Assembly: GCA_040285825.1 (NCBI GenBank)
Contig: JAUPSS010000005.1
Span: forward strand, 372,001 to 436,000
Origin: Eukaryota sp. TZLM1-RC
Taxonomy: Eukaryota; Protista; Metamonada: BaSk clade
DNA length: 64,000 nt
Direction of reading: 5' to 3'
Positions 40,617 to 47,374 of this stretch are shown here, piece after piece. The notes under the pieces are model-generated. The model saw only the letters and a program-made list of their open reading frames with translations. It was not told where the DNA came from and did no database searches. The first letter of the stretch is position 1; each line of letters starts with the position of its first letter. Made by a program: the position numbers and the translations under genes.

Positions 40617-40929
40617 CAGCTAATATCAGTAGAAATGAGATGTTGACGAAGGGGATGTGAATGAAGATATTTGAGCCTTGCAAATTCTGACAATTTAGCA
40701 GCCGCAATTGAAATCTCGATCTGTTTCAATTATTCTGCTAAACAGTGTGACGGCCGAGAGTCGATCAACGAGTTTGGTTGTATTGGCCATGTTAGGTTAA
40801 TTTGTCTTTTGTTGTTCCCTTTTTAAAATATTGACTATAAAATGTATCTGATTATTGAGAAAACATCGACTGTTCTCAATGCTCCATTTTACATGTAATT
40901 TATAGAATAACTTAAATGTTTTCATTTGT

Positions 40930-41900
40930 CTGTAAGAAACGATTGACTGGAATGAATGAAAATGATCTCTATAATAATTTATGCAGCTGGGCTGTTTTAA
41001 ATCAAGATCTCCACTCATTGTTATTGGAAAAGGGTGTTTGTGAAAACAAGTCATCAGATTCTTCACTTTTTGTAACCATTGTACCACGAAGATTTGGATT
41101 GTGTGCCACTAATGAAGCATTTGTAACAAAAATGAGATTATATTTGAATATTCCCATTAATCTATTACTATTAAAAGAAAAATGTATTTGTTCGAATTCA
41201 CCTCAACTCACTTTGCGACATGCTCTGAATTGTTCGAAATTGATAACTTATCGTTCTTCATTATATGATGCTGTTAGAGACACTGTTTTTAATATGGCAC
41301 AAACTGCAAGAATTTCGTGTATCAAAGAACCTCTGCTGAAGGAAACACTGTCATTGAATAATTTTGGTTCTGATGATAGAGGTGATGTATACTGTGATTG
41401 GATTGATAACTCTGAAGCTGCTGTTGACTTTGTCTCATGTTATGTTGCAAATGATACTTTGGTTCACAGAAGAAAACTTAATCCTGTGGCTGCTCTGGAT
41501 TTTGAAGCAAAAGAGAAACATAGAAAATATGACAAAGATACCAAAGAGGCTAATACTGGTAGAAATAAACCACCTGTTTTTATCGATTTCCCATTTTCGA
41601 TAAAAGGGAGATTATCAGTAGAGGTAGAAACTTTTTAGAATGACTTCCAAAAAATGGTTCAAGAAAAAACAATCAAAAGATTTGATATCTTTTTATGGAA
41701 TTCTCGAATTTAGTTTGCCATAATTTAATTTTAATTTGAATTTTGCCGTAATTAATAGATTACCTCGGTTTTTCAATCGAATAAGAGAAGTTTTAGCTAG
41801 ACAGCAAGCAGATCAAGATTTTGTAGTGGAAGTCTTGGTTCAATGAATTTCGTCCCATTAGTTGAGAGTTTATTTTGTTAAGTGTGCAAGTTCACCTAAA
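40930..41900 (+). mobile_element. 5'-truncated CRE-like family A copy
   Basis: ORF 40916-41638 is nearly identical to 10430-11130; 3' end as in the 9797-11370 copy. Confidence 0.9.
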
Positions 41901-41992
41901 TTAAAACAATTGTGTCTGTAATTTAATCAATTTTGTGAATTCATTTTCTAAAGAGAATAAAGTACCTGCATCAACTATTCAGTGATTCAGTG

Positions 41993-43309
41993 ATGTATCG
42001 CCTCCGTGGACAGGCGCTGTCTTATGTCCTACGTTGTGGGCAATACACTGTAGGCCGTCGTCAACATCATCACATTCACCTTGAAAATCTCTCAGTCTCT
42101 CGTGATCATGCTACCATTACTGTTTCAGAAGGACCCACTTTGCATATCAAAGACACCTCCTCAGAGGGATCGTTCATTGATGAACAACCTATACCCCGAG
42201 GAACAACCAAGGAAGTACAACCTTACTCACAAATACGGTTCGCTGAATCTCAAAACACTTTCATAGCAGAACCCCTTATTCTCAACATCCTTATCTCTTC
42301 CAGTATTGTTTCCTCAAACCAACTCGCTTCTGTCATCTCTTCTCTAGGTTGCACAGTCTTTTCATCATGGAGCTCTTCAATAACACACCTGGTTTGCTCC
42401 AGCTTTAATTTTTCTTCTACTGGGTGCTTGGCTCTAGCCTCTGCCATTCCAATAGTCACCCCTTCTTGGTTGGAAAAACTTAATCAAATTTCCAATCAAT
42501 CACATCAACAATCAAGTCAATCAAATCAACGTGTTTCTGACCTTCCACCCCTTGATGACTACCTACCTTCCATTCCAGCTCAGTTAAGAAACCTCGCTAC
42601 TCCTGAACAATTACTACCTGATCTAAACAGAAAGTCTTTGCTGTCTCAAATTTCAGTATTTATAGAAGATCCTACCCAGAAAACTACTATAGAACCTTTA
42701 ATCAAAGCTTTGGGAGGAATTATTTGCGAAACAAAAGAATTTGTTAATTTTAAGTATTTAATTATTGGAAATTCTGAAGATTCTCAAAATTCTATTGGAA
42801 TGTTGGATTTAATTAAAGCTATTGTAAAAACAGATGTGAGTGATTTGCCTATAACCACTGTAAATAACGAACCACAACAAAGTGTTTGTTCATTTGATTC
42901 TGTCAGTAGTAATTTTGATGTCAATTATTCAATGGAAGTTCCTATAAGGAGTACAGTTAGCCAAAACTTGCGTCATTCGGATTGGGAGTGTGTACGTGCA
43001 AAGGAAGCAGAGGCAGTCGATGACGTGACAATAGGTCAAAATGATGATCAAAAAGGGGATCTGGGGGTTAACAACAAAGATGAAGAATTTTCAAGGACTG
43101 AGCAAGCTTTGGTTAATTTCATCAATAGAAAAAATAAAATAGAAAAAATAGAAGCATCCAAAACTCTTTCAGATGTGCTCGAAATTCCTTGGGGCACAGT
43201 TAGAGAAGGTCAATCAAAAATTGATAGTCTAGCTATAAAAAGGAAACCTCCGTGCACTGACAGTCAACCAAAAAGGAAACGGTTTAAAAAACAATCAATT
43301 ATAAGGTGA
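41993..43309 (+). CDS. NBS1: Nibrin / NBS1 (MRN complex)
   Basis: N-terminal FHA (VGR..SVSRDHA..D.S.EGSF), then BRCT (W.SSITHLV..ALASAIPIVTPSWL), a second BRCT-like region and a C-terminal Mre11-binding-type motif KRFKK. Confidence 0.85.
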   Translation: MYRLRGQALSYVLRCGQYTVGRRQHHHIHLENLSVSRDHATITVSEGPTLHIKDTSSEGSFIDEQPIPRGTTKEVQPYSQIRFAESQNTFIAEPLILNILISSSIVSSNQLASVISSLGCTVFSSWSSSITHLVCSSFNFSSTGCLALASAIPIVTPSWLEKLNQISNQSHQQSSQSNQRVSDLPPLDDYLPSIPAQLRNLATPEQLLPDLNRKSLLSQISVFIEDPTQKTTIEPLIKALGGIICETKEFVNFKYLIIGNSEDSQNSIGMLDLIKAIVKTDVSDLPITTVNNEPQQSVCSFDSVSSNFDVNYSMEVPIRSTVSQNLRHSDWECVRAKEAEAVDDVTIGQNDDQKGDLGVNNKDEEFSRTEQALVNFINRKNKIEKIEASKTLSDVLEIPWGTVREGQSKIDSLAIKRKPPCTDSQPKRKRFKKQSIIR

Positions 43310-43430: not shown

Positions 43431-44109
43431 TTAATAATCAGAATAATATCCATCAACAGCATCATCACTATCACAATACTCAGAGTCTTCAGTTAAAAGT
43501 TCAGTTCCAAAAATAGTAACATCGGCAATAGAGCTAATCATATATAATCCAATTGATTCCAGAGCAATCATTGTTTTTCCAAATTTGGGTAGTGTGCGTG
43601 GAAGGCAAATATTAATAAAATCACAATCCAACTCAGAGGCAAAGTCCATAACTGTTGTTAGAACATCTAAATCATCAGGGTTAGAGTGGGGGACTACGTA
43701 AAATTCCATGTCGCGTGTGATGAAGCATTCAAAGGTTCCTTCAATTTTGTCGTTCTTGTTGGAGATGGAGAGAAGGATGAAGCGGAGAAGACCTTCTTGC
43801 AAATGGTCAGCAAATACTTGGGCTGCAAATTCTTCGTCGTAGTTTACCTTGTTTAAATGAGATTTAAATGGATGAGTTTTCACAGGTAGAAATCCCACAT
43901 CTTTGAATATGGGTAGCGGCACATTACAAGCAGTGCTACCCAGACGACTTAGAAGGGCTAGACACTATACGGACGGGTCCGCACAAGAATGTGCGTTTCC
44001 CAGAGGCGAGATTGGTACGTCGAAAAGCGGCGATGTTCCCGATTCCTTGTTCTAGGAAGCGTGCAGAAGACAAGCGTCTACTACTACTAGAGGGATCATC
44101 GTCCTCCAT
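43431..44109 (-). CDS. OAZ: Ornithine decarboxylase antizyme; ORF1 44109-43936 (57 aa) plus +1-frame ORF2 (open 43964-43431) by programmed ribosomal frameshift
   Basis: ORF2 has no ATG near its start and carries the antizyme C-terminal pattern (LTTVMDFASELDCDFINICLPR..TMIALESIGL). The short ATG-initiated ORF1 overlaps it in the frame requiring +1. The junction GGG-TAG-CAC-TGC-TTG-TAA-T-GTG-CCG resembles the metazoan TGC-TCC-TGA-T-G(C/T)C-CC site. Confidence 0.82.
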
Positions 44110-44173: not shown

Positions 44174-44629
44174 TGAACGCTTATTTCCAAGCGTTGAAGG
44201 TGTTGTAGGTGTTGTAGAGAGTCCCAAATCCAGCGGAAAAGCCAAAAGAGGGGAAGAAACGTGAAAAAACAACTATACAATGGGTGAGTTGAGAAATTTC
44301 AAAACTGTTGACTTTGTTTGACCAACAATAATACCACCTAATTCAAATATTTACAGCCTAAAGCTAATGAGTTCAATTGTAAGTGAATGACCACAAATGA
44401 TTCAAAATATACCCCTACTTTTTGCACTGTGTATCAATTTGAAACTAACTCAAAATCCAAAGTCAAATATACTGAACCCAACAATTATGACTTTTTCACG
44501 ATTTTAAAGGATTTTTGTCTGGAACAATATGAAAGCATTGTGCCAAGATCTGAATTGTGCCCTAGAATTGACTATTGGAAATACATAATTATATTGTTGT
44601 GTTTAAACCGAGGCAATCTATTAATAATG

Positions 44630-46270
44630 GAAAATTGAATTCGAAAGCGCCATAAAAAGATATCAAATATTTTCATTGTTTTTTCTTGAACCATTTTTTG
44701 GAAGTCATTCAAAAAAGTTTCTGCTTCATCTGATAGACTTCCATTTATCGAAAATGGAAAAGTAATAAAGAGCAGTCACAGGATTAAGTTTTCTTCTGTG
44801 AACCAAAATTTCATTTGCAACATTACATGGGACAAAGTCAACAATAGCTTCAGAATTATCAATCCAATCACAGTATACATCACCTCTATCATCAGAACCA
44901 AAATTATTCAGAGAATGTGTTTCCTTCAGCAGGGGCTCTTTGATACACGATATTCTTGCAGTTTGTGCCATATTGAAAACAGTGTCTCTATCAGCATCAT
45001 GTAATGAAGAACGATAAGTTATCAATTTAGAGCAATTCAGAGCATGGCGCAAAATGAGTTGAGGTGAATTCGAACAAATACATTTTTCTTTTGATAATAA
45101 TTGATTAATGGGGATATTCTAATATAATTTCATTTTTGTTACAAATGCTTCATTAGTAGCACACAGTCCAAATCTTCGTGGGTCAATGGTTACAAAAAGT
45201 GAAAAATCTGATGACTGGTTTTCACAAACACCCTTTTAATAGCAATGAGTGATGATCTTGATTTAAAACAGCCGAGCTGCATATATCAATATAAAGATAT
45301 TTTTCATACATTCCAGTCAATCGTTTCTGTAATGTTCGAAGAGTGTACTTCAAATTTAAAACATTCTTTTCTGGAATATTGTCATTGAATGATTGGGGAA
45401 AGCATCGACTCCATTTTTCTACATCAATTTTTGAAATTTCTTCATTTAATGCAAAAACAGTGAAACTTTGCGTTGTCATCAATAAATCTTCCCAATCTGC
45501 AAATCTTTCGGAAAACTCAATGATTGCATTTCTGCATCCACCAACAAAAGCACACGAGGTAAGAATAGAAGCCTTCGTCCACCATAAACCGCCATAATGT
45601 GGACTAAGGTAAGCATGACCTGGAATTTGAAACATTTTACATCCCAGTAATTGAGACAGAACTTCTACACGTAACTCATTAAACTTCTGAACTAAAGGTC
45701 TAGTGACGAGAGGATTTGTAGATCGAAATATATGATTAAAATTGGAACTAAAACAAAGTCTTATAATTGTAAATTTGATGTGTCTATTTATATCTAAAGT
45801 CATCATTCGGTCAATTTTGTAAGAAATTGAGTTCTTTTCAAACAATTTTTCGGTAATTTCATCATTATTTCCTAAAAACGAACCCAAATGACGAATAGCA
45901 TCAATTGAATATAATTTGGCTTGAATTTCAATACCATCAACTATTGTGGGAACTGGAGAATTCGATAACAAAACACATTTAAGTAAATTAAGTCGGAGAC
46001 CAATTTTGGTAAATAATTCTTTAAAACATACAGTTGCTTGTTTCACAATATTTAAATCACCAATAAGCACAACATCATCCATATATGCTATCATTTTTAG
46101 TGAAGGAAACATCTCTTGAATTTGCAGTAAAATAGGATGAACGGCCAAACAAAACACAAGAGGTCCTAACGGATCTCCTTGCTTTACACCACTTGATGAA
46201 CTCAAAATGTTATTACCAAAATGTAAATTAGAATATGTGCAATATGTTGATTGAAAATAGCGTTCAAATT
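44630..46270 (-). mobile_element. 5'-truncated CRE-like family A copy including RT core
   Basis: SSSGVKQGDPLGPLVFCLAVH and AYMDD, continuing into the CCHC/RLE region. Near-identical to 9797-11370. Confidence 0.92.
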
Positions 46271-47374
46271 TTTTTTGTGAAAATGTATTTATTTTTAAAA
46301 CTAGAATAATTATTGAGATAAAAAACCCATCTAGAATTCAATATCCTCCAAACAAGCGTCACTGTTACTGAACCTACTCACAGCATTACGTTCATATTCT
46401 ACACCAATAGCTAAAAGTGCCTTTGAAATCATTGTTGGAATAGACTTGAAAATGCAAAAAACAATTCTATTTAACCAGAAAGTGGAGTTCATTGTTTTAC
46501 CAGACCTATTCAGTAACACTTTTTTGAAATTTTCAAAAAAGTGCAACCCTGAAGGTCCAATATTGCCAAAAAGAGTAATTGCAAACGGCACAAACTGATA
46601 TTTCACATGTTCCACTCTACCTAACTGTGCCAAAGGTTCTTCATATTTTTTTATCTTCTTTTTTTCGGCGTTAGATAACGGCGAGTCAGCGGAATACACT
46701 AAACGAGCAGCAGAATTTTTGCAAACATCCACTGAGACAACGTCTACAACATTGAGAACACCATCGATCCCTGGAGCTACTAAATCTGCCCTTCATTTAC
46801 CAAAGGAATCATCAGTTTGATCTGAAGACAGCTTACGTACTAGTGGCTCAATAAATGCCTCTATATTGAAACTTTTGCACATGGCATATAATTGATCACG
46901 AACTGAGTCATGAACAAGTGAGCGATAAGTTATAAAATTCTTACAGTTTAAAATATGGGAAAGCGTAACAACACTCTTGCAGCGACATATTAAAACATTT
47001 GGTAATGAACAAGGCCATAGAAAACATCTCATTCTCATTGCAGTGGTCCATTGGTGATCATTAAGCAGAAGGCCATAAATGTTGGGAATTTGGGAGATTA
47101 GGCAACTTGAGCAACTGTCTTCAAGATCAATCAAAAAGTTTGCAAAAACGGGATTTTTTCCTTAGCCAAGCTAAGACGTACAATATAATCCAAGTTTTCT
47201 AAAACTTTCAAGATTTTTTTCTGCAATTTTGCAAAAGTCAGTGGTAAGGAGAGCAAGCTTCTTGAAGGAAGTTCCACAATATCAGAGGGGAAACATTTAG
47301 CCCAAATATTGGGTGAAAGAGTTTCAATTTCCTGTTGCAATGAAATAAGATATGAGCTGCCACAATTTTCAATG

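Follow-up and report, generated by a model that had tools for sequence, protein, structure and literature searches.

A gene on the minus strand of the genome of Skoliomonas litria (TZLM1-RC), a soda-lake flagellate of the metamonads, is, as judged by predicted fold, gene layout and the shift sites of its relatives in TZLM3-RCL (RCL), a very diverged ornithine decarboxylase (ODC) antizyme, of which ODC binding and polyamine response are putative. We consider it probable, at roughly 0.75, that its two reading frames are joined by one +1 frameshift at a derived GGG-UAG-C site, and that a UAA codon shortly downstream in the zero frame is a relic of the ancestral shift site. Antizyme is a brake on polyamine synthesis. 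The analysed window is a stretch of 64,000 nucleotides identical to contig JAUPSS010000005.1 (positions 372,001 to 436,000), and all positions are those of the window unless a homologue locus is named. The gene and its relatives comprise the following features.

43936-44109, minus strand: antizyme ORF1, with ATG at 44109 and 57 codons plus UAG; a homologous AUG-started ORF1 is present in GEM-RC and in both RCL paralogues
43431-43964, minus strand: ORF2 in the +1 frame, ending in TAA (43433-43431), with an antizyme/GNAT-like predicted fold and an acidic tail
43993-44001, minus strand: G-(K/R)-R peptide of ORF1, conserved; the distance from its G to the first stop is 21 codons in 4 of 4 skoliomonad genes
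43935-43941, minus strand: GGG-UAG-C, the proposed active +1 shift site (mechanism inferred), 7 nt identical in GEM-RC
43923-43929, minus strand: UUG-UAA-U, the second in-frame site, aligned with UUU-UGA-U in both RCL paralogues and with UUC-AGA-A in GEM-RC
43890-43910, minus strand: IFKDVGF peptide, starting five codons after the second site, compared by eye with jakobid VIP(D/E)LGFR (PMC1874602)
Locus L002, 4001-4664: GEM-RC antizyme gene GEMRC1_003259, with seven G before UAG
Loci L003, 3868-4489, and L006, 9955-10588: the two RCL antizyme paralogues RCL1_002565 and RCL1_007971, with UUU-UGA-U sites

The stop codons described in the earlier note were reproduced on the minus strand. In the zero frame GGG (43941-43939) is followed by UAG (43938-43936), which ends ORF1, and then by CAC UGC UUG and an in-frame UAA (43926-43924). 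The +1 frame, said to be open across both stops, runs without interruption from 43964 to 43431, and its overlap with ORF1 is confined to 43964-43936 (9 codons). Read from 43937 after a shift, the ORF2 product has 168 aa and the fusion protein 225 aa. This layout, with a short ORF1 overlapping the main ORF2 in the +1 frame and a conserved start of ORF2 that has no usable AUG, was found in four genes of three species. At its N-terminal end, the conservation of ORF2 begins before any usable AUG, so that either recoding or splicing must take place. Reassignment of UAG was rejected, as UAG terminates long genes of the window and the ORF content showed no sign of such a change; UAG is an ordinary stop in S. 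litria, used by many genes of the window. The assembly was polished with 206x Illumina data (PMC11316075). DNA-read contigs contained only scraps of the region, with one identical 151-nt piece of ORF2 and none spanning the ORF1/ORF2 junction.

Homologues were identified in Skoliomonas sp. GEM-RC and TZLM3-RCL by exhaustive protein search, and a second RCL paralogue by profile search, so that the comparison set consisted of four genes from three species and three independent assemblies. One predicted protein (P0003, 7482 aa), with 19 repeated matches to 40 residues, was discarded as spurious. ORF2 identities among the skoliomonad homologues were 36-43% (about 41-43% between S. litria and GEM-RC), and the published tree groups S. 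litria with GEM-RC and leaves RCL outside (PMC11316075). ORF1 has 54 aa in GEM-RC and 37 aa in both RCL paralogues. The antizyme neighbourhood was not syntenic in GEM-RC or RCL, and the synteny route via the neighbouring NBS1-like gene led to no antizyme homologue. A word search returned only the S. litria gene itself, and a metagenome scan returned no relatives. In the public annotation, RCL1_002565 and RCL1_007971 are hypothetical proteins of the +1 frame only. All four public gene models are probably wrong, two of them inventing an intron and two starting inside the +1 frame.

The identification as an antizyme, proposed in the earlier note, was upheld by fold and gene layout but not by the HMM search, in which neither ORF2 nor two homologues matched the Pfam family ODC_AZ (PF02100) at E-values up to 10. 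Solved antizymes in the PDB showed no sequence match to ORF2, and an Atlas feature search with ORF2 returned GNAT-like leads only (0.88-0.89) and no antizyme. A single-sequence AlphaFold model of the ORF2 product was poor (pLDDT 50), with antizyme at rank 3 (Z 6.4), and a three-sequence model reached pLDDT 64. With the better model, antizyme came first in two of three structure searches. Among 48,161 solved chains, human antizyme (4zgy_B) was at rank 1, with Z 10.5, rmsd 2.8 and 102 aligned, a score tied with GNATs, several of which fell within 1 Z. The top structure match in the Atlas was an ODC_AZ cluster (TM 0.61/0.69), and Foldseek with the three-sequence model placed antizyme at rank 4 (E 1.8e-4). 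Antizyme itself resembles spermidine/spermine N-acetyltransferase (SSAT). The predicted fold is likewise that of GNATs such as SSAT, from which the S. litria protein differs in its split gene layout and in lacking the acetyl-CoA binding motif; no R/Q-x-x-G-x-G/A was visible by eye in the four-gene alignment, and there was no Pfam Acetyltransf match. The canonical antizyme site, W-x-(UCC/UUU/CCC/GUU/AUU/GCG/CCG)-UGA, was absent in litria and GEM-RC and present in both RCL homologues. The earlier note had named a missing HMM match as refuting; in our view the structure searches and the RCL sites outweigh it, and the S. litria protein differs from other ODC antizymes in being too diverged for the Pfam model.

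In both RCL paralogues, the 37-codon ORF1 ends in W-(Y/W)-F UUU-UGA-U, and the +1 frame then reads D-V. Protist antizymes are known to use UUU-UGA (PMC1874602), and a W two codons before the shift codon is a conserved antizyme signature (PMC5009743). MAFFT aligned the RCL UGA to the litria UAA and the GEM-RC AGA, with a 12-nt gap upstream in RCL. The +1 peptides at this position agree across the four genes (N-V-P, E-V-H, D-V-H and D-V-P), and the litria second site keeps C-x-stop-U-V. The IFKDVGF peptide aligns with a (D/E)xG(F/Y) conserved in all four genes. We take the second site to be the ancestral one because of the alignment with the RCL UGA, the matching +1 peptides and the five-codon offset to IFKDVGF. 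Conservation of both stops in orthologues was seen for the first and not for the second: ORF1 of GEM-RC ends in an identical GGG-UAG-C, although its ORF2 is only about 41-43% identical, and UUC-AGA-A stands where S. litria has UUG-UAA-U, leaving GEM-RC with no second stop. Thus, the suggestion of an unusual GGG-UAG shift site accompanied by a vestigial second site gained support, both from the conservation of GGG-UAG-C in GEM-RC and from the outgroup UUU-UGA aligned with UAA.

A second stop alone is not above chance. In the equivalent alternative frame of the long ORFs of the window, stops make up 10.7% of codons, and a stop follows within four codons at 36% of positions. Zero-frame stops also occur 7 and 9 codons after the shift stop in the two RCL paralogues, and two such stops are found in the 3′ region of human OAZ1 (PMC9841425). 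On the alignment, what does not look like chance is the position of the S. litria UAA, which coincides with the ancestral stop.

The order of events would be as follows. The ancestor would have carried a classical W-x-UUU-UGA-U site, still found in both RCL paralogues. The ancestor of litria and GEM-RC would then have gained about four codons together with a new stop, GGG-UAG-C, placed four codons ahead of the old one, and this gain would have brought the first stop back to 21 codons from the G(K/R)R peptide. Lying past the active stop, the old one would have drifted to UAA in S. litria and to AGA in GEM-RC. Such a relic would be cheap to keep, because the +1 frame needs N, D or E there, and with U as the last base of the codon before, these codons produce a zero-frame stop. 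Two origins of the UAG fit the data alike: a Trp codon, with GGG-UGG standing at this position in RCL paralogue 2, or a duplicated copy of the last four codons. At the new GGG-UAG-C site, the W that is conserved at two codons ahead of the shift codon is missing. The 2007 survey lists seven P-site codons, GGG not being one of them, and about 97% of its sites use UGA (PMC1874602). The pairing of GGG with UAG matched no surveyed antizyme, and a text search of the literature returned no antizyme with GGG-stop, neither that search nor the survey being a complete check.

In the proposed mechanism, ribosomes would initiate at the AUG at 44109, translate the 57 codons of ORF1 and pause with GGG in the P site and the weak-context stop UAG-C in the A site. 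A fraction would slip one base forward, with tRNA-Gly moving from GGG to GGU and keeping its first two pairs, and would read AGC next. These ribosomes would make the 225-aa antizyme with the junction ...S-S-G-S-T-A-C-N-V-P..., and the remainder would terminate. By analogy with other antizymes, polyamines would raise the shifting fraction. UAG-C is a leaky stop context, and GGG-U parallels the known homopolymer sites UUU-U and CCC-U. To our knowledge, all characterised antizymes shift at the ORF1 stop. In tests with mammalian antizyme, UAG stimulates shifting almost as well as UGA (PMC1874602). There were no tRNA genes in the window or in the homologue loci examined. We infer the shift itself, its direction, its control by polyamines, the order of events and any role of the 21-codon spacing from sequence, fold and splice scores.

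Splicing was assessed with the following segments, together with 8 reference introns from the host gene models of the two species, a small set in which each intron was scored with itself left out.

43936-43963, minus strand: 28-nt GT-AG segment, the intron of NCBI model KAL0210913.1, fusing ORF1 to ORF2; -0.7 bits
44146-44173, minus strand: consensus-matching 28-nt intron in the antizyme leader; 14.6 bits
46771-46800, minus strand; L007, 7756-9005; L005, 19612-20741: introns annotated in transposon ORFs, with poor splice signals

All 8 reference introns were 25-33 nt long, with G at +5, A at -7 or -8, 28-43% GC and scores of 9-19 bits. In comparison, every GT-AG candidate over the UAG scored between -10 and +4 bits, within the range of random GT-AG pairs. 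The view that the UAG is unlikely to be spliced out was therefore supported, as no GT-AG pair across it fits the splice motif of this genome. Non-AG intron ends were also enumerated under the branch-point ruler, and none had a CTNAY branch. The 28-nt candidate fails the features of skoliomonad U2 mini-introns, namely G at +5, a branch A at -7 or -8 in CTNAY, and low GC.

Splicing may nevertheless have replaced frameshifting in litria and GEM-RC, through a weak 28-nt intron whose 3′ AG is that of the UAG and whose junction reads RIV-TACNVP; retention of such an intron would give a premature stop, so that splicing could be the regulated step. We regard this main rival as unlikely, and give it the weight it has because a frame-fusing 28-nt GT...AG lies at the same position in both species. 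In GEM-RC this segment has the same length and starts with GTCT, 25 nt upstream of the stop; over the first 12 nt of the candidate, the two species agree at 9 positions. Moreover, 28 nt is a typical intron length here, KAL0210913.1 uses the segment, and the decay of the old stop would be explained too. However, the candidates have neither G at +5 nor a branch A in either species, their GC content is 54-68%, and their scores of -0.7 bits (litria) and -9.7 bits (GEM-RC) correspond to the 61st and 7th percentiles of random GT-AG pairs, against 9-19 bits for the references. The NCBI model of GEM-RC takes a different, purine-rich 25-nt intron without branch A that deletes the shift site, and this annotation appears to bypass stops in transposons by similarly poor invented introns. 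That gene annotation removes antizyme shift sites is a known kind of error (PMC1874602). Judged by its splice signals, the 28-nt segment at 43963-43936 is probably an annotation artefact.

In transposon ORFs, the public annotation has apparently invented introns of 29-30 nt with poor splice signals that skip stops or frameshifts. The leader intron looks real. When it is spliced, the sole AUG within 200 nt upstream of the ORF1 start is removed and an AUG-less open frame runs into ORF1; when it is retained, an out-of-frame uORF of 39 codons (44171-44052) starts at its AUG and runs across the ORF1 start. A similar leader intron was found within 200 nt upstream of none of the three homologues.

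Two RNA hairpins around the stops bear on the next possibility.

43910-43942, minus strand: hairpin 1, arms 43942-43935 and 43917-43910, -14.8 kcal/mol, pairing the UAG site and placing UAA in the loop
43894-43913, minus strand: hairpin 2, -9.2 kcal/mol, starting 10 nt after UAA and 22 nt after UAG

Both fold as the earlier note described, and they are mutually exclusive because both use 43913-43910. Hairpin 1 was stronger than synonymous-codon controls (p about 0.008, for a window chosen after the fact), and a preset window gave z = -1.4 against dinucleotide shuffles; hairpin 2 was not significant against synonymous controls (p 0.14). Hairpin 1 was absent in GEM-RC. RCL paralogue 2 can form a comparable G-rich/C-rich pairing, and paralogue 1 part of it, with 6 of 8 pairs kept in the register of hairpin 1 and covariation not above shuffles (77/500). 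The RCL genes have a C-rich segment able to pair upstream or downstream, a loose parallel to a hairpin switch that is missing in GEM-RC, and the two paralogues share a 3′ stem-loop. Since hairpin 1 contains the shift site, it is melted when a ribosome sits there, and would at most slow the approach. A functional switch between the two hairpins therefore found no backing, given also the absence of hairpin 1 from GEM-RC. Compared with the mammalian antizyme pseudoknot, which begins 3-5 nt after the site (PMC1874602), hairpin 2 of S. litria is far more distant, at 22 nt after UAG. Rfam gave no match near the shift site. A 9-bp stem-loop at 43965-43986 (minus strand), 24 nt upstream of GGG, occupies a possible 5′ stimulator position of the yeast ABP140 type; it was marginal (p 0.05-0.2) and not conserved.

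Two-step recoding, in which readthrough of UAG-C is followed by a +1 shift at UUG-UAA-U, hairpin 1 yielding to hairpin 2 and the junction reading SSG-X-HCL-NVP, is very unlikely. Equally improbable is its variant in which two steps in a row operate, possibly beside a GGG-UAG shift, as an intermediate with the old and new sites both working. The second site does lie at the ancestral position with its C-x-stop-U-V, the UAG-C context is leaky, and hairpin 1 exceeds its synonymous controls. Yet in GEM-RC the first site is present and the second stop is missing, and UUG, which re-pairs poorly on UGU, is not among the known antizyme P-site codons (PMC1874602), so that this suggestion found no support. 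Two inefficient steps in succession would yield very little product, no CAR-YYA readthrough motif is present, chance alone places a stop within four codons in 36% of cases, and many genes of the window end in UAG. Neither a readthrough context (CAR-YYA or CUAG) nor the extension is conserved, with CAC-UGC and 3 codons in litria and CGG-GUC and 24 codons in GEM-RC.

Other recoding within the 9-codon overlap at 43964-43936, such as a +1 shift upstream of the stop, a slip by -2 or a short hop, has a slim chance. The +1 frame opens at 43964, and the run of seven G in GEM-RC would permit -2 re-pairing; on the other hand, a -2 slip from the litria GGG gives no re-pairing, GGG-UAG-C is the only conserved block in the overlap, and characterised antizymes all shift at the ORF1 stop. 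Similarly slight is the prospect of no recoding at all, whether because the assembly is wrong, the gene is broken or the GNAT-fold product is no antizyme. The junction lies outside the DNA-read contigs, no ODC_AZ HMM matched and GNATs tie in the fold searches, but the recurrence of the +1 offset at the ORF1 stop across four genes and three independent assemblies, the intact and conserved state of both ORFs, the textbook W-x-F UUU-UGA-U site of the RCL genes, the lack of a visible GNAT acetyl-CoA motif in the alignment and the 206x Illumina polishing all speak against it. Finally, an in-frame intron of 39 or 30 nt whose 3′ end is the UAG, and which would leave one classical C-L-UAA-U site with the junction CGP-HCL-NVP and yield G-P-H-C-L-stop, near the canonical G-P-x-W-C-S-stop, is scarcely credible, as the splice scores are 0.6 and 2.1 bits with no branch A at -7 and it is unworkable in GEM-RC, which has no second stop.

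A single +1 shift at GGG-UAG-C can be compared with known antizyme systems. The UUU-UGA antizymes of protists, Agaricomycotina and nematodes (Ivanov and Atkins 2007, PMC1874602) are alike in the short AUG-started ORF1, the overlapping +1 ORF2 and the fold. The RCL homologues, with W-x-F UUU-UGA-U, likewise resemble mushroom antizymes with GGP(G/E)WRF (PMC1874602), and skoliomonads have a (D/E)xGF peptide similar to the VIP(D/E)LGFR found five codons after the shift site in jakobid antizyme (PMC1874602). Litria and GEM-RC differ from the UUU-UGA antizymes in having GGG-UAG-C with no W at -2 and no G/P-rich motif at -8 to -5, and in the relic of the old site four codons downstream. Budding-yeast OAZ1 (GCG-UGA-C, also GCG-UAG, and CCG-UGA in K. 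waltii) is alike in its lineage-specific P-site codon starting with G, in the C after the stop and in the occasional UAG. In contrast, the yeast GCG works without P-site re-pairing (PMC12661321), whereas GGG-U in S. litria permits re-pairing at the first two positions, and the yeast site changed its codon where the S. litria site appears to have moved. Mammalian antizyme 3 also has shift-site look-alikes adjoining the real site, the GN-UCC-UGC duplications (PMC1874602), but these pseudo-sites lie upstream, arose by duplication and have no stop, whereas the S. litria relic is downstream and ancestral, with its stop kept in one species.

Exchange of the P-site codon is familiar among antizyme shift sites; in these three related genomes, the site itself seems to have moved by four codons. 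The unchanged 21-codon spacing offers a natural experiment on whether the nascent peptide senses polyamines outside Agaricomycotina. The gene would also extend frameshifting antizymes to Metamonada, and to an organism that possibly has no mitochondrion-related organelle; a literature search, which was not exhaustive, found no earlier report of one in that group.

Next to the antizyme gene, a gene encoding FHA and BRCT domains (NBS1-like; 41990-43309, plus strand), for which a word search found no homologue, converges on the antizyme 3′ end. Fragments of a non-LTR retrotransposon at 44600-47200 and 40900-41900 flank this pair of genes on both sides, and read depth at the fragments is high because they are present in many copies.
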